Below, piece after piece: positions 1 through 46,544 of a stretch of 64,000 bases of DNA. The DNA is from Thalia democratica (taxonomy: Eukaryota). How positions within the stretch are numbered: position 1 is the first letter of the stretch; each line of letters begins with the position of its first letter. Below the pieces are notes generated by a model. It made no database searches, had not been told where the DNA came from, and saw nothing but the letters and a program-made list of their open reading frames with translations. Location of the stretch: positions 66,960,001 to 67,024,000 of the forward strand of contig OZ241830.1 of the NCBI GenBank assembly GCA_965202585.1, in the 5' to 3' direction. The translations under genes were made by a program, and so were the position numbers.

Positions 1-1598
1 TTTATTTTTCATGTCCTGAAAAAGTTACTAGTTCTTATATATTATATCAAATATATCAGACCACTTTCCACTTTATATTAAACTGAAAAGTTGCAGTTTT
101 ATTTCAAATAACCTATAGAATAAGAATAAATAAATAAATATTAAAAACTTATCAAGAATTAACACTAATAAACTTTTTACTGATGCTACTCAAGTTTTCA
201 ACAAATATGAAACAGATAAAATTATTAAATCTAAAAATTCCATAGATACCAAATTTAATTACTTAAAAAAGAAAGTTAAAGAGATTACTGACCAAAATGT
301 TCCAACTAAAAAAAAATTCCAAAGCTAAATTAAAATCTAAACCCTAGATAACAAAAGAAATACTAAAGTCTATTAGAAGAAAAAGTAACTTATTTAAAAA
401 CGTTTTCAAAAATAATTTTAATAACCCAGTTAAGTTACAAGAATACAAAATATACAGAAATAAACTTACAAAACCAATAACTAATTATAAAAAAGCATAC
501 TATGAAAACATTATAAAAAATTCATACAAAAATACATCTAAAGTTTGAATGTAGTAAATAACATCATTAGTAGACAGAAGAAAGACAGCCATTTTCCACA
601 TAGATTAAATGTGGATCAAAAATCTTACACAAAACCATTAGACATAGTAAAAACACTTAACATTCATTTTTTTAACATTGAAAAGCAAACATCAACAAAA
701 AAGATAACCCACTAGGTTTAACTGACAATCTCAAAAACGTTAGGAATAGTTTTTTTTTTTTGTCTGGTGTTACAGAAACTTTAGTATTTAATATTATAAA
801 GAGTTCAGATCTAAACAAAGCTAGTGGTGAAGATTGTATATCTATAAAGACCCTTAAGAAAGTAAACAATCTTACATCCCCATTACTAAGCAAATAAATT
901 AACCAAGCATTTTATGAAGGTGTTTATCCAAGTAACCTAAAACTCGCAAAAGTACAACCAATTTTTAAATCAGGGTTAAAACCTTTACCAGGAAATAATG
1001 GACCCGTTTCACTTCTATCTAATTTAAATAAAATAATTGAAAAAGTAATCTATAATCACCTGTATAGTTTTTTTTCTAAAAATAAAATTTTTAACAATTC
1101 TCAGTTTGGCTTTCGACAGAATCATCCTTGTCTGAATTTGTCGAAGGGGTTATTTCCAATTTTGATAAAGGAAACGGAGTTTGTGCAGTCTTTTTGGATT
1201 TAAGTAAAGCATTTGATAGTGTAGATAAAAATATCTCACTAAGGAAATTGGAATGTTATGGTGTGAGAGGAAATATGCATCTACTAATCAGCTCATATCT
1301 AGATGGAAGGAAACAATTCGTTAGCTTTGGAGGATATGAGTCAACCTGTGAAAACAGTGAAGTTGGGATACCACAAGGCTCAGTATTAGGACCGTTGTTA
1401 TTCCTAATACCTATAAATGACTCAGAGAATAATACAAGTCTTAACAACCTCAACTTTGCAAATGACACAATGTTATACAAAACATATACAAAAGACACAT
1501 ATCTAAATGACAGTAAATATTTTAACATAGAACAAAAAAGGTATCAGATTATAATCAATTGTTATAAAGGTCTTTGTAACAAATTCTATAAAAAATAA
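1..1598 (+). mobile_element. Decayed CR1/L2-clade non-LTR retrotransposon ORF2 (endonuclease end, tether, RT)
   Basis: SDHFP-like endonuclease C-terminal motif near 55-80. RT N-terminal motifs AKVQPIFK and QFGFRQ at 940-1120. ORF 1128-1598 has VFLDLSKAFDSVD, GIPQGSVLGPLLF and a degenerate FAND(D). Frameshifts and stops upstream. Confidence 0.88.
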
Positions 1599-1775
1599 AA
1601 AATTGTAAAAGTAAGTGTACTAATAACTTTAATAGTATAAGAAAATATAAAAACCAAAAAAGTTAGTTTATGATTTTTTTAGAGACTGATTTTAACTTAA
1701 GAAAAGTTTTACGTTACAGTGTTTTTTAAACGAGTTAAAATTTTAATTAAAATATTTATTCTTTCAATACTTTGT

Positions 1776-1816
1776 TATGCAAACTAAGTTTCGGTCAAAG
1801 ATCTCATCAGTGCTTA
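1776..1816 (-). ncRNA. Minimal type I hammerhead ribozyme motif (Penelope/retrozyme-like)
   Basis: Minus strand reads taagca CTGATGA gatc-ttt-gacc GAAA c-tta-g-TT tgcata. Both core boxes are exact. Stem II has one mismatch, stem III is 2 bp, and stem I is 5/6 paired. Confidence 0.62.
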
Positions 1817-3199
1817 AATAAAAATTTAAAAAGATATGTAATAGTCATGAAAATAGAAAAGTATGTTACATATATACCAGACCATTTTAAAGTTTATATT
1901 ACCAAGTGTTTGGGAAAAAAACCTACAATAAAAGCCTAGTCTAAAGTGTCAAAAGTTTGGTATAGTAAACCGGTGCTGGAATGCTGACACTCATGTGGTT
2001 GCTAATCTACGGTAGTGAAAGTTGGTACGTTATTATTCTTAATTGTTCCTCCTTGTTTTTTTTCAAAACTAACTCCGTCATTCAGTACAACGTAGTGGAC
2101 ACTTTTATGCAAATAGTGTGAAAATAACCATAATTAGTTTTATAGCTGTAATTTTTTAGAGTTAATAATGTATTTATACTCAAAAACGTGTTGAAAATTT
2201 CCATCTGGTAAAAAAAACACTGGTCTTTTAGACATTAACTCTAATGATGCAATGGCTAGAGAAATGGCTTGCTTTTGAAATGAAATTACGACTGTGGACA
2301 GATGAAAATAACTACACTTTAATCCTAAACCTTGAAGCCAACCTGTTTGGCATTTGTCATTTATAAATAGACACTACATTTATTAAATTTTATACAAAAT
2401 CTTTAATCAAACTTGAAGTTTAGCAATATATCCAGTTTCAAAATATCAAAAAATATTCAAAGAATTCTACTGACGTAATCCCTACAAATATGTTACAGAT
2501 ATATTAGACCATTTTTAAGCTTGTATTACCAAAGAGTTGTGAAAAAAAACCTACAATAAAACGAAGAAAAATTGCAAAAGAAATGTTAAGTTGTTTAAAT
2601 AAGTTAATACTAATTTTGTTATATCTTTAAAAGTTATTCGCGTAGTGTAAATAGTAAAATATTTCCAACACCGTTGTTTAGTTGTTAACAAAGGCCATTA
2701 CCGTAAATAAAAGATCTCTCTTAATCTAAAAGACAGTAGAGATCAAAGATGACTTTTAATAGACAAGAACTCGTACAGTAAAATTTTGGATCAAAAAGGA
2801 AGATGCTATGCTCTTGAAAAACCAATATGTGCATTAGATTAGAGTGTTATCAAAATGGTTAGTTAAAATATACTTATTAAATATATTAATAATAAAACAC
2901 TTAAAGAAATTAAAGTTTGAAAAATAACAAGTACAATCAGTACCAAAAAAGCTTCTAGTTGTGACTTTCCTGGTTCATGTATAACATGTTCCAGCACAAA
3001 ACGAATATTGTTTTTTCGAACTTTTAGTTTAAAGTCATAGACTTCTTTAAAATTTTGTTATATAAAATGAATGTTTTTTTTTTCTTACCTAATAGATTTT
3101 AAGGTTTTTTTTTCACTACTAACTTCGTCTTTGTCAAGATAGTTCTCGTCATTTTCTTTTGTCTGTAATTTTGACATCAATTTTTTTAAATCTTATTAA

Positions 3200-4075
3200 A
3201 AAAATATTTACTGAATACCTATACAGAGTTGTAAGAATTTTTTATTAACTTGGTGCTGTACACCCGGTCTCATTCTTTTTATTTTATATCAACATCTTTT
3301 CATTGATTCAATCATCATAAAATTTCTGTTTGAGTAGTCTATACTAAAAATAGATTCACAATTTAGCATTTCCTAACAATTATATTCAAAGTATTAAATA
3401 CAGCGTCAAAATATACATTAATGTGAAATTATCTACTATCTCAGGGTTGCTTCTTTACCTGGAAAAACCTGGAATTTCAACAATTTTCACATGTTCAGTA
3501 GTAAAATTTCGATTTGACTTAAAAAACCTATCATATGAATAGAAAATTTTTGTCATCATCAAATTTTTTTTTTAATTAAAAAACATACTTAATGTAGATT
3601 TAAAGTATCTTTGCAGTGTTTTATACTATTTACCACAGTTTCTTACCTTAAACTAATGACCATCTTTAAACTAAAAACCGACCCAAAAATGTGTACTTAA
3701 AAAAACATGATAAAATGCTGAAAAAACGAGTGACAACCCTGTTATCTCTATATTTACTTGTATGGTCTACTTCTCAACTTTCATTGCCTTCTGATAAGTA
3801 CTTCTTGGAACGTTAGTTTAATGGCTCACTATGACGCTTACTCTTTTTTCTATTATTTGTTATTTCGATATTTTGAATTTGCTGTTTATTAATTTCTCAG
3901 CTGCTATCACTTGATACATACTTATTTACTGTTGTAAAACGATTTGTGGTACTTTTATCTACTTTAAAACTTTCAATAGTTTCTACTTCTGCAGCTCCTT
4001 CATTATCTGCTAAACTGATTTTACTAACTTAACTTCTGCACCTTCTGCAACTGCTGAAAAGCTGCTTCTCAGTAA
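3200..4075 (-). repeat. Dispersed repeat family X, copy A (decayed unidentified ORF), interrupted by a MITE
   Basis: Alignable by eye with 4400-4782 (direct) and 32690-33290 (inverted). Confidence 0.7.
3442..3741. mobile_element. MITE, CAGGGTTGCC-TIR family, 6-bp TSD
   Basis: TIRs cagggttgc...gacaaccctg. Flanks ctatct/ttatct (5/6). The interior is the reverse complement of the copies at 41402 and 53279. Confidence 0.85.
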
Positions 4076-4159
4076 AAGTATTAAGATAACAATTAAAAAA
4101 CTAACTAAGTAAAAATTTTAGTGTCCTAATATATATGATTCTGAAAACGTGCGGTAAAA

Positions 4160-4782
4160 TGTTTTAGTACACCGGTAAGCCGTGCCAATACTCGAAAAAA
4201 AACTTAAAACACAATTTCAACAAAACTTTAAGAAATTTTTGATATATATCTTCAATTCTTCTAAGCATGTGCATTTCAATTTCCTTTCTTGGAACATTTT
4301 TTTTGTTCATATAAGTTTCGATAACTTCCTTAGAGTGTTCTATTATCAATTATTATTACCTTATTATTTAAACCCTAGAAAAAAAAATATATACTGATTA
4401 CTTAAGAACTGTTAGAATTTATTATCAATTTGTAGTTGTTGTACACCCGGTCATATTCTTCTTCGTCTGTTTTAGCATCTTCTTAATAAGATGATCATGA
4501 AATCTCCATTTGAGTAATCTGTACTAAACTAGATTCATAGTCTAGCCTTTCCGTACTACGATATCCAGTAGTACAAAACACTAAGTCAATATCTACATTA
4601 GTCTAAATTTCACTAATATATGTATCGTTTACTATACAACATTCATCCTGATAAGTACTTTTTGGAACAATGGTTCACTATGACGCTGAGTTTTTTTTTT
4701 TACTGTTCTTTAATTTGATTTTTTGAATGTGCTGTCTATTAATTTTTTGCTGCTATCACTTGATGCATACGTATTTACTGCT
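4160..4782 (-). repeat. Dispersed repeat family X, copy B (decayed acidic/coiled ORF, possibly gag-like)
   Basis: Minus-strand reading VDIDLVFCTTGYRSTERLDYES...DEEEYDRVYNNYKLI, with the homologous reading at 33040-33230 (+). Product not identified. Confidence 0.6.
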
Positions 4783-4791
4783 TAAAAAATT

Positions 4792-5320
4792 GGAGTAGTA
4801 GTGAAATTATAAGACTACCACCAATATGTTGTTTTGGTTGATAGATCTGGTCGCTTATTAGTTCGAAATCATAAAATTATAAGGAAATATAACCCATCTG
4901 GTTGCAAATCTATAAGCAGTATCTTTTATCTAATAAAAGCAAACATAGCACTGCAGAAGTTTATTTTTTTTAGAAATGATGTAAAAAGAAATATTTCAGG
5001 AAAATGACGATGTTCTGTGCTTACAGAAGGAGATAAATGACAAAGCTGGAGATAATTATAGCAAGATTCGCAACGTGAAACCAGCTACCTTACTTTCACC
5101 TGAGGACTCGAATTGTATGGGCGTAGGCCAATGCTCTACAAAGGAGAAAATCTGCATTGTCTCGTTCAGATCTTTAAAATAAACCTGGATTTTCTGAATG
5201 AATTTTGGTGGACGATGGAGTGTCACTAGAGAATGAGCTGCGTCGTTCTGGTCGTGTGTGAAAACGGAGAAGGATTTAAGATGCCGAAAATTGTACTTAC
5301 AAACTTGTTTAAACTGTAGT
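4792..5320 (+). mobile_element. Gypsy LTR retrotransposon integrase C-terminal tail remnant
   Basis: Reads GVVVKL*DYHQYVVLVDRSGRLLVRNHKIIRKYNP and ends LRRSGRV, typical of Gypsy integrase tails. An inverted copy lies at 31925-32475. Confidence 0.72.
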
Positions 5321-7571
5321 TTGCATTATTGTTTTTATTAAGCTGATTATTTAAGCTGCTTTTCATGTTTATATAAATGTGCATTTCTCTTAAAGTTGAA
5401 TGTGTTTTAAAGTTTGAAAAGCGAACAGTAAACTAAGTTATGCAAAATTTCCAGCGTTTTTTGTCTGATCACCGATTTTTAGAACTAAAAACTGTATTTA
5501 AGTTTACAACTTCTCTTTAAATAACTTTATTTTTCTAGGTTAAAGTATCGATTATATCATTTGTAGATAAAATCTGAGGGAGATGTGTATGTATTTGTCT
5601 GGCTATAATTGTAGATTTGTATTATTAGATAACTTTATTATGTTTGTTTTTTTTTTCAGATTTAGTCATACTTGCAATTTGTTCGTTAATAAAAAATAAT
5701 CAATTAGATAATTATTTAACAACTTTTGATCAATTTAAATGAATATTATTGAAAATATATTCAAATGAATTGACTATCCGCAAATATAAAAACATAAGCC
5801 ACAAGCACATTGACAACAAACTGGCCAGATGAATAATCATTAAACATAAAACAAAAAAGACTCATCATTACTAAACAAGGACAACTGGTAAAATTGAGGC
5901 TTATTTAGTTCTCAATCTTAAATACTATATTCTTGACATTTTTTTCTTTAGTTTAGATATTTTATTAAAATCATTTTTTATATCTTTGTCACTAGTAACA
6001 AATTGAAATTCTGATTACATCTTAGTATTTTAATTATGCAGTATTGGTTAGCAAAAACTGTTGCTTTTATTAAATATATGTTGTTGAATTATTGTCATTT
6101 TTCAAGGTTCATAATAATAACCTTAACTCAAAGAAAACATTTAATAAATAATCAATTTTTAATAAACAGTATTAAGAAAAACGTTCCAAGTTAAATAATA
6201 AATTATATATTAAAGACACATTAAATTTTGAATTTTAATACAAGTTTAAAAAGACTATTTACATCGTAAAAGTTTTTAAAATCAAACTCGATCAAGTTAT
6301 AGCAATGTACAATATTAACAGCTATTGTTAAATTCATTCAAGGACGTCTATTTGGAATGCTAGACGATTTCTTAACTGTAGAATCTGTGTTTTTTGAAAA
6401 TATTACTTTCGTATAGTTAATTTAAGCAGAATATTTTACTAACTTACAAATTCAATTTTCTAACTTATAAAAAGAACTTTTGTTTATTATATCTTTTGTG
6501 TTCTAAAAATTATTTAAAACATAATTAAAAACGTAAAGCAAAACATTAGTAATAACTAAGCTATTTATTAAGCTGCTTCAGAACGCAATCTTTACCAGTG
6601 TTTCACAGCTTTTACACATATCTAACTATAATTTTATGTACGACTATTGTAGTTCTTAAAGGTGATTGGAAGGGGCCACAACTAAAAAACCGTTTTTATA
6701 TAATTGCAAATATTTATTTCTAATGAAATTATAATAAAACTAACATTTAGTTTTATAATTTTAATGCGTGTGAATAAACACGGATTTTTTGTTAACATTC
6801 TTATATCTTTCTCATAACAATTTACAAACCTTCCAAAAAAATAGTTTTTAGCACTTGGTAGTAATTGGAGTGCTATTATGTTGTGCTAAAAACGCGTTAG
6901 ATTTAAGAATTAAATACTTTTTTTACTTAAGTTCTAATATACTTATTAGTATTTTTTGATCGTTTAAATTCACCTGTAACTTTAGTACAGTGTAATGTAG
7001 TTATAATATATTATTGTGCTTTTGTAGTTCATGTAAATAAGAAATATTTTTCCATTTGATTTGTAAATATATATCCAATCTACCCTTCCTTTACCCTATT
7101 ACCCTCAAGAACCAATATATTGAGATAAAGTTGTGGCCCTTTAATCTTTTTTTAATAATTGATGTATTTTTGACCTAACCATATTTGACCATTAAAACAT
7201 TGTACAAGTACAGAAGTGATAAGAAATATAAAAAAAAGTAATTATGTAGTTTTACTCGAAACTAAACTTTTTGAAAAAATAACTTTTGAATTTAAAGACA
7301 CTTTATTAAATCTCGTAATACAACTAAGTAAATTGTTTTTTAATTAAAACAGTTATATTGCGAGTAAAAATTCGCACTTATAAACTTGATTTACGTACAA
7401 GAATTTCTTTAATAAATGTTTTATTTCTAGACTGATTGTTATAAACTTATATTTTCAAATTTATAATTGCATTAATATAAAAATTTAGGAGAAATTATAC
7501 AATTGTGTGAGTTAAGTACTTCAAATCAGTATGACTTACTTTATAACTGGCTTCAATTATTTTTACTGTAC

Positions 7572-38639: not shown

Positions 38640-39300
38640 TCAAAACATAATGTCGTCTCCGACATTTGAAAATAATTTTCAAATCCCTTGCTGACCGACA
38701 CCTTCACTCAACTGGGGGTTGATCACCGTTTTGTACCCCCTTACCCGGCAAATGGGTTCATTGAGCGTCAACATAAAACGATAAACCAAGCGCTGCGCGC
38801 CATAGAGACAAAAGCCAATTGGGCACAGCGACTACCGCTTATCATTGCAAGCATAAACAATACTTCCATAGAAGGTTCTCCCTATACTCCTTCCCAGTAT
38901 ACCCTAGGGGTGAGTGTGAACTTACCAGGTCAAATTTTCAATGATAGCATAAGGGAACTAATTTTGGTTGTGATCCTTTGGACACAATGTTATTCCTAAA
39001 TATTGTGTCCGACATTTGTCGCAAACACCAGCGACATAGGAATGTATACTATGAACCCTCTCTGTTTCAGTGTGAAAAAGTGTGGGTCAGACGTGAGAAC
39101 AAGAGGAAACTCAGATCCATTTATAATGGCCCGTATACAGTTATTCGTACCTTTGAACATTCAATGTATATTCAGAAAAATTGTGGGGTGGTGGAGGTTT
39201 TCATTCGCAATGTTAGAGCATATTTTCCAAGAAAGGACCTAGAGGGCGGAGACGATAATAAAAACAGAGGAGATAGATACAACCTCAGAGAAAGGCTTAT
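38640..39300 (+). mobile_element. Gypsy integrase remnant
   Basis: PPYPANGFIERQHKTI (catalytic E region), W...LP, TP, and YNGPYTV (GPY/F module), frameshifted across ORFs 38688-38999 and 38978-39334. Confidence 0.88.
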
Positions 39301-40649
39301 TGATATTCTTATATTCATATTCGTCACATATTGATATGTATAATTGATATTTGTATATATTTCATATTGTTTATATATACTTTTAATGGATATGAGTAAG
39401 AGACACTGTACACATAGTCAAGAGAAGGGTACTGGCTAGAGCCATGCAACTATTAGAAGTTACTCTGAGGCAGTACCTGTTCCGCCGGTGCTACCAGGCC
39501 CTCCAAGCGGACAAAGCTAATGTTATCAAAATGAACTCAAAAGTCCGCATTTGTAAAAATATTGAAATGGAATGACACAAGATTTCATTTTACAAATAAA
39601 AGTTTTAGAAGATTGTATCTGCTAAAGAAAATTAAGTTCTTAAAAGCATAATTGAAAATATTTATTAACAGTAGATGAAACAAGTCTGTATTTATAAATC
39701 ACAAGCAGAATAAAACATTAGAACCAGGTAAAATGCTATATGATTAAAAGTTATAAACCCATTATAAAAATAAAGTTGACAACTTATGTTCATATGGAAA
39801 ATAACCAACTAAGAAAGTTTATAAAAAGTGTATAAGGACTCATCTCAAGTTTAAACAAAGATAACAAGATCTCTAAGAAGAGTTTCAATTTTTAAGAACG
39901 ACCAGAACACTTTCAAGCTTTTTATTGTAAATAAGATAAAAAATGAATAATCATCACTTGGCAATAAAGACGAAATGACAAGAAGGAAAACTAAAAATCA
40001 AATATGAAAAGAATCCTAGATCGTACAGAAATCTAATCAAAGGTAAAAAGACTTATAAGCGATAAACAATCATCTTCAAATGTAGTTGAATATGCTAACG
40101 GATAACGGGGATGCCAATGCAAAATAGAGTTATTATCGTTAGTAAATAAAGCAGATTAATTTATAGCTAGTCTTAAATATCTAAAACAAAGTTTAGAAAA
40201 TTTTTAAGTAAAACTTTATAGGAAAGACCAAAAACTTGTATGACAAAACAAGAAATCATCATGGCTCGAGTGACTATAACTCTGATAAAAAAGTTAAATC
40301 TGGATGATAAACAGAGCACAATACCAAAGAGGAGAAAAAGAAAAATTAATCAAAGTGAAGCATTATACCAAATGAAACTCAAAGTAAAAAGATAATTTGT
40401 TAAACATTACACTTCAATTTTTTTTCTTTCCAATTTGTTTCGAAACAGGCTTTGCTTGCAATTTTAAAAGAAAAAGTAATACAAGCTATTTCCAATTATT
40501 AATGTTACTTAAAGTAATGTATCACTAATTTCATTCAATTTAGATGAAATTAGTATAGAAGAGGTAGACATAAAAAGTGGTAAAATACAATTTATGCCTG
40601 AATGTAAAGAAGATATTTTTGTACATAACGATGAAAAGTCTGACCCGAA

Positions 40650-41910
40650 TATTTTATAATTTAACTAATAAGTATGTATTCATTTAATGGCATTACAAAT
40701 ATTCAATACAACGTTGAATGTCCATCTAACTGTTGTTTTCTTAAGCCAAAATTCATTAAAAAAATTGATAAAAGTTTTGAACAAAAACATAAATAGGTCA
40801 AATCATGAAGTTTACCTTGAGTTTAATTATCTATTCAAAACCAGGAAAAAATTCAATTATTTAATGTTAAAAATTAGAAAATCTAAAGAAGTAACAGTTA
40901 ATACAAACAAATATATTTCTGTTGACCAAATTTGCCAACTGACCAAGTTTTGTAACTCAAGTATTCCATCTGAGGATAAAAGTACTTTGCCCTTTTTGTT
41001 AAGTATTTTAATGAAACTATTTTAGATATATGTATATAGTCTAGGTGTAAATAGTTCTTCTACTTTGTATATTGATAGAACTATTGATCGTAGTGAATAT
41101 TTTATTACTCCTATTACAAATTTTAATACTAAATTGTATAGGCAAAGTACTAAGAAAAACCCTATTTAAATGGGTTGTTTTTACTACACACATCTACTTT
41201 AAGTAAAAAAGATTTTTTTTAATTTTTTGACCATTTAAAAAATGTTTTGTCATCTTGTTGCTCATGTTAAAGGTGATTCTGATGTTTGGAAAACAAATTC
41301 ATTTTATGTTACTGATCAAGAAAAGGGTATAATATCAGCAATAGATGATGTTGTTCCTAATTGTCAAAGAATTCTATGTTCTAGGCACATTAATGAAAAC
41401 ACAGAGTTGCCACTTACTTTTTCAAAAAAATTTGCAGGTTTTCCAATTTTCTTCCAATTTTCAAAGGTACACATTTTTGGGTCTATTTATAGTAGAGTTA
41501 AGTTAAAGGTAAGAAACTGTGTTGAATAATATAAAAACATTGAAAAGATACTGTGCAGCTACTTTAAACATGTTTTTTAATAAAAAATTTTTTGATGATG
41601 ACAAAAATTTTTATTTGTATGATATATTTTTTAAGTCAAATCGATATTTTACTACTAAACATGTAAAAACTGTTGAAATTTTAGGTTTTTCCAGGTTTTT
41701 TATTTCGCCTAAATTGTCAAGTTTTCAGGTAAAGTGGTAACCCTAAAAACATTATATTAAAACTACAATCAAAAGTTTTAAAAAATATATTTAAAAAGTT
41801 GACGGAATGTAAAACCTATGATAGTTTCCTTGAATTAAGAAACTCAATTGTAACTAATTCTAAGTAGGTAGTAATATTAAAGTTTCTGGTTATGTTTTAA
41901 ATCAAATAGA
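40650..41910 (+). mobile_element. Decayed Mutator-like (MULE) transposase interrupted by a MITE
   Basis: YVTDQEKGIISAIDDVVPNCQRILCSRHINEN is the MULE D...CxxH motif. Removing the MITE plus one TSD restores the frame (RHINENIILKLQSKVLKNIFKKLTEC). Confidence 0.8.
41402..41745. mobile_element. MITE, CAGGGTTGCC-TIR family, 6-bp TSD AAAACA
   Basis: cagagttgccactt...aagtggtaacccta. AAAACA at 41396-41401 and 41746-41751. Confidence 0.88.
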
Positions 41911-42380
41911 TCTACATAAATAAAAATGGTAAGAACCATTAAAAAAAATCAGTCACAGTCTTTTACAACCACTTAGAATAGATCTTTCGTTTATTAAAAA
42001 ACAAACATTTTCAATTCTGTAGAAAACAAAAAAATATACTAGCAACTAGAGAAAATTAAGTACCGTAAATTAAATATTTTTAGCAAAATTTAAAATAAAA
42101 CTAAAAACTACCATATTGTTAAAATACTGAATTTCATACTATTACTTTAAAATTAATAGGACACTTATATTTGAGATTAGTCAGTAAAATTTGATATAAT
42201 TTTTCAATTTGAGAAACTGAAAAAAAGACACTTTGGAAAATTATTTTTGTTTACTGTAACTAAGAAAAACTATTTCTATAAACAACAAACAATTAAAAAA
42301 TTCTCTAGTATTGTACTTGGTAAAAAAATATATTTTTTTTTTTTTTTTTAATGACATTTTCAAATTTTTTATCATTAAAA

Positions 42381-43661
42381 CTATTCCTTAAAAACACTGT
42401 TTAAATTAATTTTTGCCTTAGTTTTTTTAATCCACCATTGTTCTGTGTAGTCTAAATTAGTTCTTATAGGGCTTTCTAAAAACTGGACTGTGTAGGCATT
42501 TTCTATTTTTTCTGGTATATTGTTTTTGTGAAATTTATTATAATGTATAATTAGAGCAAATTGATCTTTTATTTCATGGTTTAGTTCAGTTTTATTGTTT
42601 TTCCATATGTTTCTGTGGGCATTCCACCTCTTAGTAAAGCTATTCATAGTCTGTCCAATGTATAAATTTTTGCATATGTTGCATGTAGCTGCATAAATTC
42701 CATAATTGTTGTTTAATTTTCATATTTTGTATTGTTTTGTTTTTACTTATCATACTTTTATTATAGTTTCCAAAATTTCCACACAAAGCACACTTTCCAC
42801 ATTCAGCTGTTTTGTTGTTTTCTGTTTTTGTAAAATTATTTTTGTTTATTAATATATTTCTCAGTGTTTTTGGTCTCTTATAAGTTAATCTTAATAATTC
42901 TGTACTGTAACATTGTTCATTTTTGCTAAAATTTATAAATTGTTTAAAGCTGGTTGCCCAAGTCACTTTTTCATTTTGTTCTGTTTTTTTTATGTTATTT
43001 GTACTAGGATCTTTATTACATACTTCATCTAATTCATTAAAGGTATTATTTATTAATTTTTTACTGAAACTTGATCTACTGCATTTAATTTTTAAGTTAA
43101 TTAGCGCCTTTTCATAATCTTCTGTTTTTTCATTTAATTTTTTAAGTCTATTAGCTTCTGATAAAATTATTCCTCTAAAAACATGTGTTGGATGGTAAGA
43201 ATTGCCATTTAAAAATTTTGCTAATTTTGCTGTGGGTTTGGTGTGGTTTACTGTTTTAAATCCGTTTATTTCTGAGCTATTTATAATATGTAAAATATCT
43301 AAAAATTCCAGTTGTTTTCCTTCTTCTGTATTTGAGATTTTTTTAAATTGTAAATTTAGATCATGAGATTGAAATTTTTTGGTGAGTTCATCTTGAATAA
43401 AAATAGCTTTATCTGCTGGGCACAAAAAAATAATGTCGTCTATATATCTTTTATAAATAAAACACAATTTTAAAAAGTTTAAATTTTTAGTTATAAAGTG
43501 GAGGGCAATATTTGCCAGTGAGACGCTGAAATTTTCTCCTGTAGGTATCCCTTGGTTATTCTTGTATAGACTATTTTTAAAACTAACATAATTGTTTTCT
43601 AAGCAGAACATTATTGTTTCTACTATTTGTTTATTTTGTTTACAGTTATAATGAGTACAAA
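42381..43661 (-). mobile_element. 5'-truncated Penelope-like retroelement ORF (RT plus GIY-YIG), left copy, frameshifted
   Basis: QGIPTGENFSVSLANI, YKRYIDDII, LEFLDI, HPTHVFRG, CGKCALC. A 14-bp deletion breaks the GIY-YIG domain. Confidence 0.93.
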
Positions 43662-44900
43662 CTGCTTAGAAAACAATTATGTTAGTTTTAAAAATAGTCT
43701 ATACAAGAATAACCAAGGGATACCTACAGGAGAAAATTTCAGCGTCTCACTGGCAAATATTGCCCTCCACTTTATAACTAAAAATTTAAACTTTTTAAAA
43801 TTGTGGTTTATTTGTAAAAGATATATAGACGACATTATTTTTTTGTGCCCAGCAGATAAAGCTATTTTTATTCAAGATGAACTCACCAAAAAATTTCAAT
43901 CTCATGATCTAAATTTACAATTTAAAAAAATCTCAAATACAGAAGAAGGAAAACAACTGGAATTTTTAGATATTTTACATATTATAAATAGCTCAGAAAT
44001 AAACGGATTTAAAACAGTAAACCACACCAAACCCACAGCAAAATTAGCAAAATTTTTAAATGGCAATTCTTACCATCCAACACATGTTTTTAGAGGAATA
44101 ATTTTATCAGAAGCTAATAGACTTAAAAAATTAAATGAAAAAACAGAAGATTATGAAAAGGCGCTAATTAACTTAAAAATTAAATGCAGTAGATCAAGTT
44201 TCAGTAAAAAATTAATAAATAATACCTTTAATGAATTAGATGAAGTATGTAATAAAGATCCTAGTACAAATAACATAAAAAAAACAGAACAAAATGAAAA
44301 AGTGACTTGGGCAACCAGCTTTAAACAATTTATAAATTTTAGCAAAAATGAACAATGTTACAGTACAGAATTATTAAGATTAACTTATAAGAGACCAAAA
44401 ACACTGAGAAATATATTAATAAACAAAAATAATTTTACAAAAACAGAAAACAACAAAACAGCTGAATGTGGAAAGTGTGCTTTGTGTGGAAATTTTGGAA
44501 ACTATAATAAAAGTATGATAAGTAAAAACAAAACAATACAAAATATGAAAATTAAACAACAATTAAATTGCAAAAATTATGGAATTTATGCAGCTACATG
44601 CAACATATGCAAAAATTTATACATTGGACAGACTATGAATAGCTTTACTAAGAGGCGGAATGCCCACAGAAACATATGGAAAAACAATAAAACTGAACTA
44701 AACCATGAAATAAAAGATCAATTTGCTCTAATTATACATTATAATAAATTTCACAAAAACAATATACCAGAAAAAATAGAAAATGCCTACACAGTCCAGT
44801 TTTTAGAAAGCCCTATAAGAACTAATTTAGACTACACAGAACAATGGTGAATTAAAAAAACTAAGGCAAAAATTAATTTAAACAGTGTTTTTAAGGAATA
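43662..44900 (+). mobile_element. 5'-truncated Penelope-like retroelement ORF (RT plus GIY-YIG), right copy
   Basis: Same RT motifs plus CKNYGIYAATCNICKNLYIGQT...R..AH (GIY-YIG with Cys/His motif). Premature TGA at 44848-44850 where the left copy has TGG. Confidence 0.93.
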
Positions 44901-45749
44901 GTTTTAATGATAAAAAATTTGAAAATGTCATTAAAAAAAAAAAAAATATATATTTTTTTACCAAGTACAATACTAGAGAATTTTTTAATTGTTTGTTGTT
45001 TATAGAAATAGTTTTTCTTAGTTACAGTAAACAAAAATAATTTTCCAAAGTGTCTTTTTTTCAGTTTCTCAAATTGAAAAATTATATCAAATTTTACTGA
45101 CTAATCTCAAATATAAGTGTCCTATTAATTTTAAAGTAATAGTATGAAATTCAGTATTTTAACAATATGGTAGTTTTTAGTTTTATTTTAAATTTTGCTA
45201 AAAATATTTAATTTACGGTACTTAATTTTCTCTAGTTGCTAGTATATTTTTTTGTTTTCTACAGAATTGAAAATGTTTGTTTTTTAATAAACGAAAGATC
45301 TATTCTAAGTGGTTGTAAAAGACTGTGACTGATTTTTTTTAATGGTTCTTACCATTTTTATTTATGTTTATCTAAAATTCAATCCTGTCCGGTCTTTAAA
45401 ATCAAAAGAGGAAGACTACCTTCATCCCATTTTAATTTCAAATAGATCTAATATTAAAATTTAAATTAATGGTTTTTGATTGTAGTTTTTTCATTGAAGA
45501 AGACGGTATAACCTTTTGTCTGTATAAAACTAGTCCAAATGCTAAAACCGTCAAGTTTTAATGGGAATAAGACGATTTTGTTTGCTAAACCAAAGAAATA
45601 TACCTAACCTTATATACAGGAGGGGATATTGGTTCCATTTTAAAGAGATACACGTAACAAACTTATAGTTTATTACATACTGTTGACGCCGTTTCGACTT
45701 TTTATCAGTCATTTTTAGATAAAAAAACTGAGCAAAATAACTTCTACTG

Positions 45750-45960
45750 ATACAATTTATAAACAAGAAATCAAAAACCTATAAGAAAAGTTCTTAAAAA
45801 ATGGTTATCCAAACGAATTTGTTGATGACGGAATTGAAAGATCTATATAACAATAAAGAGTGGACTAATGAGAAATATCAAAAAAAGTTCAAACTTCAAA
45901 AACATCCTTAAAGTACCTTACATTGGAAAACCAAGTATTGAATATAAAAAAAGAAACTAG
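45750..45960 (+). mobile_element. Short Penelope-like RT thumb fragment from a different family
   Basis: YKQEIKNL*EKFLKNGYPNEFVD. Confidence 0.55.
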
Positions 45961-46358
45961 AAAAACTATTGAACAATTATACTGAAGACAATATTGAAGA
46001 AATCAGAGCCATGTAACATTACAGTCGGTAAAACATTACCAAAATAAAGCTTGCTTAAATTAATTTTGTAATTATAAGTATAAACGATCACTTGAATTGT
46101 TTTAATATTATAAGTAAAACGGTGAACTGTACATTTTAAGTAGGACAAAATAGTTTTCAACTTAGAAGTAGCTTCAAATATCTTAATAGCTATGTATAGC
46201 TCAATTAAATAATGCCTGAAAGATCAGTGATTTTTTCTTGCCAGATGGAAAACTTAAACACGTTTTAGAATGCAAATATGAACACTCTTAAAAAGTCTGA
46301 GTTGTAAAATTAAATACAGTTGTTTTAATTTGTTTAAAAATATTTACACTATTTGCAG

Positions 46359-46544
46359 AAACATGCAATCTTGACCCACTACTGCGTACTATGTGACAAA
46401 ATAGGTTTTGAGAAAAAAAAGGAGGAACTAGAGATTGTAACGTACCAACTTTCACGTACGTACTTTTGCAACCACATGAGTGTCAGCATTACAGCTCCCG
46501 TTTACTCCGCCAAGCTGCTGGCACTCAGATCCAGGCAGTATTAA
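46359..46544 (+). pseudogene. Orphan Argonaute (AGO-clade) PIWI-domain C-terminal exon
   Basis: tttgcag| acceptor followed by THYCVLCDKIGF...ELEIVTYQLSRTYFCNHMSVSITAPVYSAKLLALRSRQY*. This is colinear with the AGO consensus SHYHVLWDDNRF...[33 protein letters not shown]. Confidence 0.78.

Follow-up and report, generated by a model that had tools for sequence, protein, structure and literature searches.

Introduction

Insertions of EN+ Penelope-like elements (PLEs) typically carry an inverted, 5'-truncated copy of the element, a tail at one end and a target-site duplication (TSD) around the whole unit (PMC8557442; PMC3846280). The canonical account of this architecture, by Evgen'ev & Arkhipova (2005) and Arkhipova (2006), is taken here as relayed by Craig et al. 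(2021; PMC8557442). The definition of EN+ PLEs includes a CCHH zinc-finger motif with two cysteines between GIY and YIG (PMC8557442), and the endonuclease of Neptune/Nematis-type elements combines a C-terminal GIY-YIG domain, a CX2-5CxxC linker and this CCHH motif (Craig et al., 2021, PMC8557442). A hammerhead ribozyme in the pseudo-LTR (pLTR) is reported to be usual for the canonical clades with a C-terminal endonuclease, without being defining for all PLEs. As to mechanism, purified protein of the Poseidon PLE from Anolis can cleave the top as well as the bottom strand and extends either one (Frangieh et al., 2024, PMC11167929), and its reverse transcription starts from two internal sites, the interval between which corresponds to the genomic 'tail' (PMC11167929).

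Here we describe a locus in a 64,000-nt stretch of Thalia democratica DNA (contig OZ241830.1 of assembly GCA_965202585.1; the whole stretch is hereafter called the window), for which the original prediction, made from the sequence alone, had proposed a palindrome of two Penelope copies formed by a fold-back template switch. We confirm the palindrome, whose shape, however, is an ordinary one that has already been published for PLE insertions (Craig 2021; Arkhipova 2013; Frangieh 2024). What is new at this locus is its true edges, namely a 13-bp TSD, a 71-nt extension present on the right copy only, and a spacer belonging to the left copy only.

Results

Two truncated copies in opposite orientation

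A repeat search placed the inverted arms at 41907-43606 and 43662-45374, matching in three collinear blocks on either side of a 55-nt spacer, and BLAST aligned one arm with the reverse complement of the other at 1692/1714 identities, in keeping with the near-identical arms of about 1.7 kb that had been predicted. Counted strictly inside the element, the arms measure 1692 nt (41915-43606) and 1705 nt (43662-45366), and differ by 4-5 mismatches and by two indels, one of 14 bp and one of 1 bp in a homopolymer. Besides the 14-bp indel, variants that tell the arms apart lie at 43806, 43814, 44656 and 44850. Both lesions called beforehand, a 14-bp microhomology deletion in the left arm and a TGG-to-TGA change in the right, are present (Table 1): the 14 bp are retained in 28/28 aligned copies and in 39/39 other genome matches scored, and G stands at the position of 44850 in the left arm and in 27/28 other copies. 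Because every difference between the arms proved private to one of them in an alignment with 28 other copies, the data support the conclusion that the two copies were made together and have diverged little since. The nearest other copies lie about 1.7-2.4% away from the arms in the window.

Table 1. Features of the composite insertion, in window positions; the ruler for reference-copy positions is the natural copy L031, not a family consensus.
Feature	Position	Strand	Description
Target-site duplication, left	41902..41914		13 bp, TCAAATAGATCTA; identical to 45438-45450
Left PLE copy	41915..43661	-	1747 nt; reference-copy positions 1603-3376 of 3440
14-bp deletion site, left arm	42702..42708	-	Between TAATT microhomologies; position ambiguous within these bases
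55-nt 'spacer'	43607..43661	-	5'-most part of the left copy; element sequence in all longer copies
Right PLE copy	43662..45437	+	1776 nt; reference-copy positions 1660-3440
TGA stop, right arm only	44848..44850	+	TGG in the family
3' extension, right copy only	45367..45437	+	71 nt, comprising 8 nt (TTTATCTA) and the 63-nt 'tail' (45375-45437)
Target-site duplication, right	45438..45450		13 bp, TCAAATAGATCTA

Both copies are truncated at the 5' end, the left inside the RT domain and the right 55 nt further in. In other copies the spacer adjoins the arm in the orientation of the left copy, which is its sole owner at the locus, and it extends the minus-strand ORF (...KQNKQIVETIMFCLENNYV) in just the way seen in another copy with a full-length ORF; the prediction of a spacer in the minus-strand frame and a left copy longer by 55 bp was therefore correct. 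The further suggestion that the plus strand of the spacer resembles a splice acceptor followed by an in-frame ATG fared less well, as this strand simply lies opposite coding sequence, in a genome whose GC content is about 26%, and the function is unsupported. The centre junction (43661/43662) shows 2 nt of microhomology, and this junction and that of the deletion each occur once in the 802-Mb assembly.

One target-site duplication and one tail

A perfect 13-bp TSD brackets the whole composite and directly adjoins both element ends; it is the only one, with no internal TSD between the two copies. The true edges of the element differ from those of the palindrome. At the left edge of the apparent palindrome, the last 7-8 bp (41907-41914) come from the target and form part of the TSD, and their likeness to the element is only chance or microhomology. 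Because these left edge bases belong to the TSD and the right copy runs 63 nt past the palindrome edge, to 45437, the outer ends are not symmetric. The left copy has a 'short' 3' end (...TTTATTTATG) without the tail, about 466 nt downstream of its stop codon, close to the 470 bp anticipated. The 3' end of the right copy is 'long', and its extension is common to more than 20 copies, which terminate in ...CCCATTTTAATT. The 63-nt tail consists of the first bases of the element unit, the same bases beginning the full-length unit, and the 3' end and tail together fold no better than shuffles (z = -0.86).

On the right side, a 113-nt unitig of run X1, with a depth of 36.7 that corresponds to single copy, matches 45415-45527 without difference, 23 nt of it on the element side. 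Among the short-read unitigs of runs X1, X3, X4 and X16, none of those shown bridges the centre, the arms being swamped by contigs that match at family level. The original prediction also envisaged cruciform extrusion and a dsRNA hairpin as a source of siRNAs; such a source would need a transcript that reads through both arms and small RNAs of either polarity from them, and the metatranscriptome contigs of X16 show matches to the family as a whole only. Searches with the two flanks revealed neither a paralogous nor an allelic empty site, since the matches, all at other loci, were partial (about 81-94%) and never had both flanks adjacent. The outer edge had been thought to run into a decayed MULE frame, a view not borne out here, as the edges are set by the TSD and the MULE-domain remnant is confined to 41242-41529, ending about 400-500 bp to the left. 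A Piwi fragment lies at 46353-46544, and a profile search of the other flank ORFs returned no match.

Coding capacity and assignment to PLEs

ORFs, profile matches and motifs support the predicted identity of the locus as two head-to-head, 5'-truncated RT/GIY-YIG Penelope-like copies. In the left copy the minus-strand ORFs 42640-43611 and 42381-42647 are split by the frameshifting 14-bp deletion, and a profile search gave RVT_1 at 21.4 bits. The ORF remnant of the right copy (43627-44850) spans RT motifs B-E, the thumb, a CxxCxxC linker and GIY-YIG, with RVT_1 at 21.1 bits, under the 29.6 cut-off, and GIY-YIG at 22.4 bits (cut-off 22.6); in a full-length relative with a 682-aa ORF, GIY-YIG reaches 24.7 bits, over the cut-off. 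The RT motifs QGIPTG...S, YIDDI and LEFLD were read directly in the ORF, and precomputed Pfam annotations of homologues hold both RVT_1 and GIY-YIG. The closest proteins are ENA metagenome predictions at 38-97% identity.

The order of domains, RT followed by a C-terminal GIY-YIG in a single ORF, is that of EN+ PLEs, and the CCHH motif (NYGIYAATCNICKNLYIGQT ... IIHYNKFH) can be read both in ORF 43627-44850 and in the ORF of L031. The latter copy also has a pseudo-LTR, in the form of a direct partial copy (reference 2295-3440) immediately upstream of the full unit, and the first 70-88 nt or so of this unit are repeated after its 3' end. The copy in the window is without a pLTR because both of its arms are truncated. 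For the hammerhead ribozyme, there was no Rfam match at E<=1 in 41000-46300 of the window or in 3900-9200 of L031, and a regular-expression search of the unit's sense strand found no CUGANGA or CCGUAGA core.

Related insertions elsewhere in the genome

The family is abundant in this AT-rich genome of a marine animal. The same design recurs at no fewer than 14 other loci, on 8 contigs, and 22 head-to-head pairs were compared, 15 of them scored for tail and TSD ends and seven by coordinates only. One tailed end is paired with one short end in 15/15 scored pairs, a pattern with a probability of 3e-5 under independence of the ends and even odds of being tailed or short. In nine composites, that of the window included, a TSD of 12-15 bp encloses the entire inverted unit. 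Of the 15 pairs, 10 have their tail on the shorter copy, which is not significant (binomial P = 0.30) and from which we draw no rule. For most pairs, the two arms are more closely related to one another (99.3-99.9%) than to any other copy.

Inverted partial copies had been described as usually short, a generalization that does not hold for this family: partner lengths range from about 105 nt to 2.4 kb, and L034, on another contig, is a larger near-perfect palindrome with arms of about 2.4 kb (2444 / 2432 nt). Strong asymmetry prevails, offsets in most pairs amounting to 500-2750 nt. Near-symmetric pairs number 6/22, where 2.1 are expected (permutation test, P about 0.01, and 0.03 when the window is left out). 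Four near-symmetric pairs have scorable ends, and in two of them, L003 and L010, it is the longer copy that bears the tail.

Discussion

The composite is probably the product of one retrotransposition event, in which both nicked target strands were primed, at two initiation sites, and the resulting cDNAs were joined at the 2-nt microhomology. Two priming events are needed because the spacer is found only on the left copy and the 71-nt extension only on the right, and a TSD at both ends, the uniform end pairing across the family and the PLE-type protein all count in favour of this reading; the excess of near-symmetric pairs, unexpected for two fully independent cDNAs, counts against it, as do the negative searches for an empty site, for a unitig across the centre among those shown, and for a canonical hammerhead. 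The GIY-YIG endonuclease of the element would nick both target strands, 13 bp apart, and each freed 3' end would prime reverse transcription of element RNA. Priming of the bottom strand at the distal initiation site would yield the right copy with its 63-nt tail, and priming of the top strand some 70 nt upstream, in the TTTATTTATGTTTATCTA zone and with the help of target/RNA microhomology, would yield the left copy with its short end. Both cDNAs would halt inside the RT gene, 55 nt apart, and their 3' ends would join at the microhomology, each then serving as template for completing the other strand. Two dead-on-arrival, 5'-truncated copies would result, head to head between one 13-bp TSD, and the few differences between their arms may be later changes or RT errors. 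This order of events, and the role of RNA as the template of both arms, we infer from the anatomy of the insertion.

A hybrid route is possible, if less probable than dual priming throughout. Both strands would again be primed, the bottom-strand cDNA remaining short; the left cDNA would snap back via the 55-nt loop and the 2-nt microhomology, copy itself to make most of the right arm, and anneal to the tail-bearing cDNA. In its favour, the arms were identical at birth, the spacer is part of the left copy, without a tail, and so has the orientation that snap-back from the left cDNA demands, and both the mild excess of near-symmetric pairs and the self-priming proposed for PLE inverted junctions (PMC3846280) are consistent with this route. 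It requires an extra annealing step, however; the large offsets of most pairs argue against small-loop snap-back as the general route, and L003 and L010 have the opposite geometry. We consider it unlikely that the near-symmetric palindromes (those of the window and L034) arose from two active sites of a PLE dimer copying the same RNA in tandem. Such sites would begin synthesis about 70 nt from one another and end it together, the spacer of 55-72 nt representing the spacing of coupled reverse transcriptases, and the stoichiometry and processivity of PLE enzymes could then be read from paired 5'-end offsets in the genome.

The remaining explanations are much less probable. A separate second insertion, in which another family member hit precisely the 5' end of a truncated copy already in place, is very improbable: PLE endonucleases can target their own sequences (PMC11167929), but a single TSD surrounds the composite, the arms share one source that is distinct from the nearest other copies and bear private changes only, and strict pairing of tailed with short ends would not be expected. 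An assembly artefact, through fold-back chimeric long reads or a collapsed repeat, is just as improbable. Complex tandem and inverted PLE insertions do trouble whole-genome shotgun assemblies, short-read ones especially (Craig 2021, PMC8557442), and no spanning read was seen at the centre among the short-read unitigs shown. Against this, the arms differ by the 14-bp microhomology deletion and 4-5 substitutions, a kind of evidence to which the original prediction had already appealed, and to which can now be added different unique flanks on the two sides with a perfect TSD, asymmetric outer ends that match the two canonical termini of the family, a unitig of single-copy depth across the junction of tail, TSD and flank, and repetition of the design elsewhere in the assembly. 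The single-primer fold-back originally expected, whereby one target-primed cDNA folds back and the second arm is wholly copied from the first, has still less to recommend it. Near-identical arms, and a short spacer that continues one arm where the other starts abruptly, do suggest such an origin, yet the left copy, which as owner of the spacer would be the template, is without the right copy's 71-nt extension, and the right cDNA is without the spacer. As a fold-back product cannot hold sequence that is absent from its template, the anatomy contradicts this model, which moreover predicts an inverted copy of the flank where we find a direct 13-bp TSD, and for which the 10/15 pairs with the tail on the shorter copy are impossible. 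We regard inverted duplication of a single truncated copy after insertion, by replication fold-back or repair, as the least probable explanation of all; events of this type do yield palindromes with short spacers, but here the duplication must have stopped exactly at canonical termini on both sides, with a tail on one side only and a direct TSD, and would have to have recurred repeatedly across the family.

If dual priming is correct then little changes, and the locus is a clean, well-delimited example of published PLE architecture. The presence of the spacer on the tail-less arm offers a simple logical test that excludes single-primer fold-back, and the combination of spacer and tail supports priming on both strands, in agreement with in vitro work of 2024. 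The invariant end pairing, together with the mild near-symmetric excess, could inform the incompletely known mechanism of PLE integration. Annotators should treat a palindrome of this kind as one insertion rather than as two elements or an assembly error.

Relation to described elements

In the twin priming of human L1, a model that dates reportedly from the 2001 work of Ostertag & Kazazian, the second primer anneals internally on the same RNA; the two segments then come from different parts of the element that do not overlap, and the outcome is an inversion rather than a palindrome. Dual priming as envisaged here would share with it a staggered break that primes on both strands, a microhomology join and a single TSD. 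The two differ in that each arm here starts from a 3'-terminal initiation site, so that one stretch of 1.7 kb is present twice; the different, adjoining segments that mark L1-type twin priming are absent, the arms having 1.69 kb in common, and we rejected this candidate.

The resemblance to canonical EN+ PLEs is much closer. In both, copies have lost much of their 5' part and are joined there to an inverted copy that is 5'-truncated as well; a tail may extend one of the ends, but not the other; the TSD enclosing the unit varies in length; and longer family members, such as L031, contain partial tandems (pseudo-LTRs). The locus differs from these elements merely in degree: the truncation points of its two copies nearly coincide, making a near-perfect 3.5-kb palindrome, its tail is of 63 nt, whereas 30-40 nt are usually quoted, and the canonical hammerhead was not detected in the regions of this family that were searched. 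The family resembles the endonuclease of the Neptune/Nematis type in its motifs, with C-x2-C-x2-C (CGKCALC) ahead of GIY-YIG, C-x2-C within the interval from GIY to YIG, and H-x4-H downstream.

The two start sites of the Poseidon PLE match the one tailed and one tail-less 3' end of each pair here. Poseidon belongs to a different clade and host and was assayed in vitro, whereas the family described here is known from sequence. Its start sites are alike on both strands, whereas the present family appears to use one site per strand, in 15/15 pairs, and differs further in the target microhomology shown by the site of its short end.

Structure of the palindrome and coding content of its arms

The claimed 3.45-kb palindrome exists: a repeat search of the window resolved three collinear inverted blocks, and a BLAST alignment between the left part and the reverse-complemented right part returned 1692/1714 identities with 15 gap bases. 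The window is free of N bases, and its GC content is ~26% throughout. Other details of the original prediction also hold, namely that the minus-strand frame runs on through the spacer, that the left arm carries a 14-bp deletion flanked by TAATT and the right arm a TGG-to-TGA change, and that the arms extend about 470 bp (~466 nt by our count) beyond the stop codon.

Features of the insertion and its flanks
Feature	Position	Strand	Detail
LTR-retrotransposon remnant, candidate	38688-39334	+	ORFs such as FVPPYPANGFIERQHKTINQALR
MULE transposase domain remnant	41242-41529	+	PF10551, E 6.4e-7; ~400 bp left of insertion point
High-depth short repeat, candidate	41362-41723
13-bp TSD, TCAAATAGATCTA	41902-41914 and 45438-45450		directly outside both element ends
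Palindrome arms	41907-43606 and 43662-45374
Left copy, including spacer	41915-43661	-
Spacer	43607-43661		55 nt
Right copy, including tail	43662-45437	+
Tail	45375-45437	+	63 nt
Piwi domain C-terminal end	46353-46544	+	PF02171, E 1.3e-7, 31.6 bits; 63-aa ORF

When set against 28 other copies, the differences between arms amount to five substitutions and two indels, each private to one arm; one of the five substitutions and a 1-bp indel fall in a homopolymer tract. Given these exclusively private differences, and nearest other copies that are 1.7-2.4% distant, the arms stem from a single source and started out identical or almost identical. Each of two junctions, that of the deletion and that at the centre (43661/43662), occurs once in the assembly. 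That the insertion is young is true in a relative sense (0.24% of sites differ between arms, and the target-site duplication, TSD, is intact), but the family includes several younger pairs, and the age of this one could be masked by conversion between its arms. The 'complementary lesions' noted previously are real but without consequence, as the N-terminal half of the reverse transcriptase (RT) is missing from both copies, which were dead on arrival.

Translation of the arm ORFs yields the C-terminal half of an RT (motifs QGIPTG...S, YIDDI and LEFLD), then the linker CGKCALC and a nuclease of the GIY-YIG type; these linker and CCHH motifs suggest an endonuclease (EN) of Neptune/Nematis type. 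Pfam matches are weak for RVT_1 in the arms (21 bits), and for GIY-YIG reach 22.4 bits in the arm and 24.7 bits, over the cut-off, in a full-length relative. A search of the 802-Mb assembly with the right arm (window at C6:66960001-67024000) gave 97 scored matches among 853 first-look candidates. Other copies extend 5' of the arm into sequence that matches the spacer in reverse complement, so the spacer is normal element sequence and part of the left copy. Longer copies define a family unit of ~3.4 kb, in which a 148-aa ORF lies upstream of a 682-aa RT-EN ORF; in L031, a natural full-length copy, a direct partial copy (pseudo-LTR, pLTR) and an inverted fragment precede the full unit. The closest proteins in a 5.8-billion-protein set are nine predictions from ENA metagenome contigs, and the DNA occurs in sequencing runs from two coded organisms as well as many marine metagenomes.

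Element ends and flanking sequence

Alignment of the 3' ends of ~45 copies fixed the outer edges. The right copy passes the palindrome edge by the length of the tail, terminating ...CCCATTTTAATT, and this tail is common to >20 copies and matches exactly the bases with which the unit begins. The left copy ends sooner, at ...TTTATTTATG (41915, plus strand). Because the same 13-mer abuts both ends, the apparent palindrome consists of target DNA at its outermost bases, and the resemblance of target TAGATCTA to element TTTATCTA likely reflects priming microhomology. Eight other family composites carry duplications of 12-15 bp at the same position, and the chance of such a match is roughly estimated at ~1e-4 per locus at this composition. 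Among short reads, a unitig of single-copy depth spans the junction of tail, TSD and right flank, with 23 nt on the element side; the centre is bridged by none of the short-read unitigs shown. An empty insertion site was not found.

The proposal that the outer edge runs into the MULE frame is not supported: the insertion point lies at 41914/41915, to the right of the MULE remnant. The supposed splice acceptor plus ATG in the spacer is not supported either, being coding sequence of AT-rich DNA read in reverse complement. Summed unitig depth between this remnant and the element is ~57,000-89,000, compared with ~30-40 in unique flanks (runs X1 and X3), which suggests a very high-copy short repeat, depth not being equivalent to copy number. 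Further left, some ORFs resemble a retroviral-type integrase core or C-terminus by eye, and may mark an LTR-retrotransposon remnant. An Argonaute/Piwi gene fragment lies ~0.9 kb right of the insertion.

Origin of the head-to-head arrangement

Read along the top strand, the locus runs from the left flank and TSD through the minus-sense left copy with its spacer to the sense right copy, the tail and the TSD again. The two cDNAs meet at a 2-nt microhomology, and family contigs from three runs track the window up to 43663, then diverge. The palindrome had been attributed to a fold-back template switch, and self-priming was discussed by Arkhipova et al. (2013; PMC3846280). In a fold-back, only the left cDNA could be the template, as owner of the spacer; snap-back adds only sequence already present in the template, and the 8+63-nt extension of the right copy is absent from the left cDNA, just as the spacer is absent from the right. 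A single-primer fold-back is therefore excluded, and this asymmetry argues that each nicked strand primed its own cDNA. On balance, we favor a single head-to-head insertion of a Penelope-like element (PLE) with dual-strand priming and the standard published architecture, in which each nicked target strand would prime a cDNA, and both cDNAs would then join head to head.

Mapping of the sampled loci onto the full-length copy revealed one tailed and one short (tail-less) end in 15/15 head-to-head pairs with scorable ends (P = 3e-5, if ends are independently tailed or short with equal chance). The tail lies on the shorter copy in 10 of these 15, for which simple fold-back is thus impossible. Partner lengths range from ~105 nt to 2.4 kb, and most pairs have arms more closely related to each other than to any other copy. 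One palindrome, L034 (contig C5, G000:C5:59768547-59776314; locus 1437-6274), exceeds the window palindrome in size: its tailed arm measures 2432 nt and its short-end arm 2444 nt, the offset is 72 nt, the arms differ by 1 mismatch and 2 gaps over 2355 nt, and a 13-bp TSD, TGTTATTTTGTAA, flanks the palindrome.

The 5' ends lie ≤120 nt apart in 6/22 pairs against 2.1 expected from random pairing (permutation P 0.011; 0.03 without the window), a modest excess with ascertainment caveats, seven of the 22 being known by coordinates only. The near-equal cDNA lengths in the window (1747/1776 nt) and L034 (2444/2432 nt), together with this excess, may indicate coupling of both reverse transcriptions; the excess would also allow for snap-back in some of the events. 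Separately, G000:C6:52060133-52062674 (coordinates only) is a head-to-head pair symmetrically truncated at its outer ends, both arms ending at one shared internal position (838 in the query of the right-arm search). Another locus, L010 (G000:C8:56453455-56458154; locus 1501-4157), combines three parts within one 12-bp TSD (a long copy on the minus strand, a 350-nt 3' fragment in tandem and an inverted fragment with a tail), which is evidence that one event included a template jump onto a second 3' end.

Comparison with published Penelope-like elements

The family shows one departure from C-terminal-EN PLE clades, in which hammerhead ribozymes are reported to be the norm: in neither L031 (3900-9200) nor the window (41000-46300) was a canonical hammerhead detected, Rfam returned no hit at E ≤ 1, and the CUGANGA core is absent from the sense strand of the unit. 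The putative role of the palindrome as a cruciform or dsRNA/siRNA source is plausible in general, and small-RNA polarity switches are reported at PLE inverted structures in Adineta (PMC3846280). Published PLE insertions are highly 5'-truncated, often with an inverted 5'-truncated copy adjoining the 5' end, and bear a tail of 30-40 bp, often at one end only (Craig et al., 2021; PMC8557442); inverted pLTRs with a tail on one, and a 9-bp TSD surrounding the entire insert, have been described (Arkhipova et al., 2013; PMC3846280). A purified PLE protein has been shown to cleave both strands and to extend them, with initiation at two internal RNA sites, the interval between which constitutes the tail (Frangieh et al., 2024; PMC11167929). 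The window locus matches all of these listed features.
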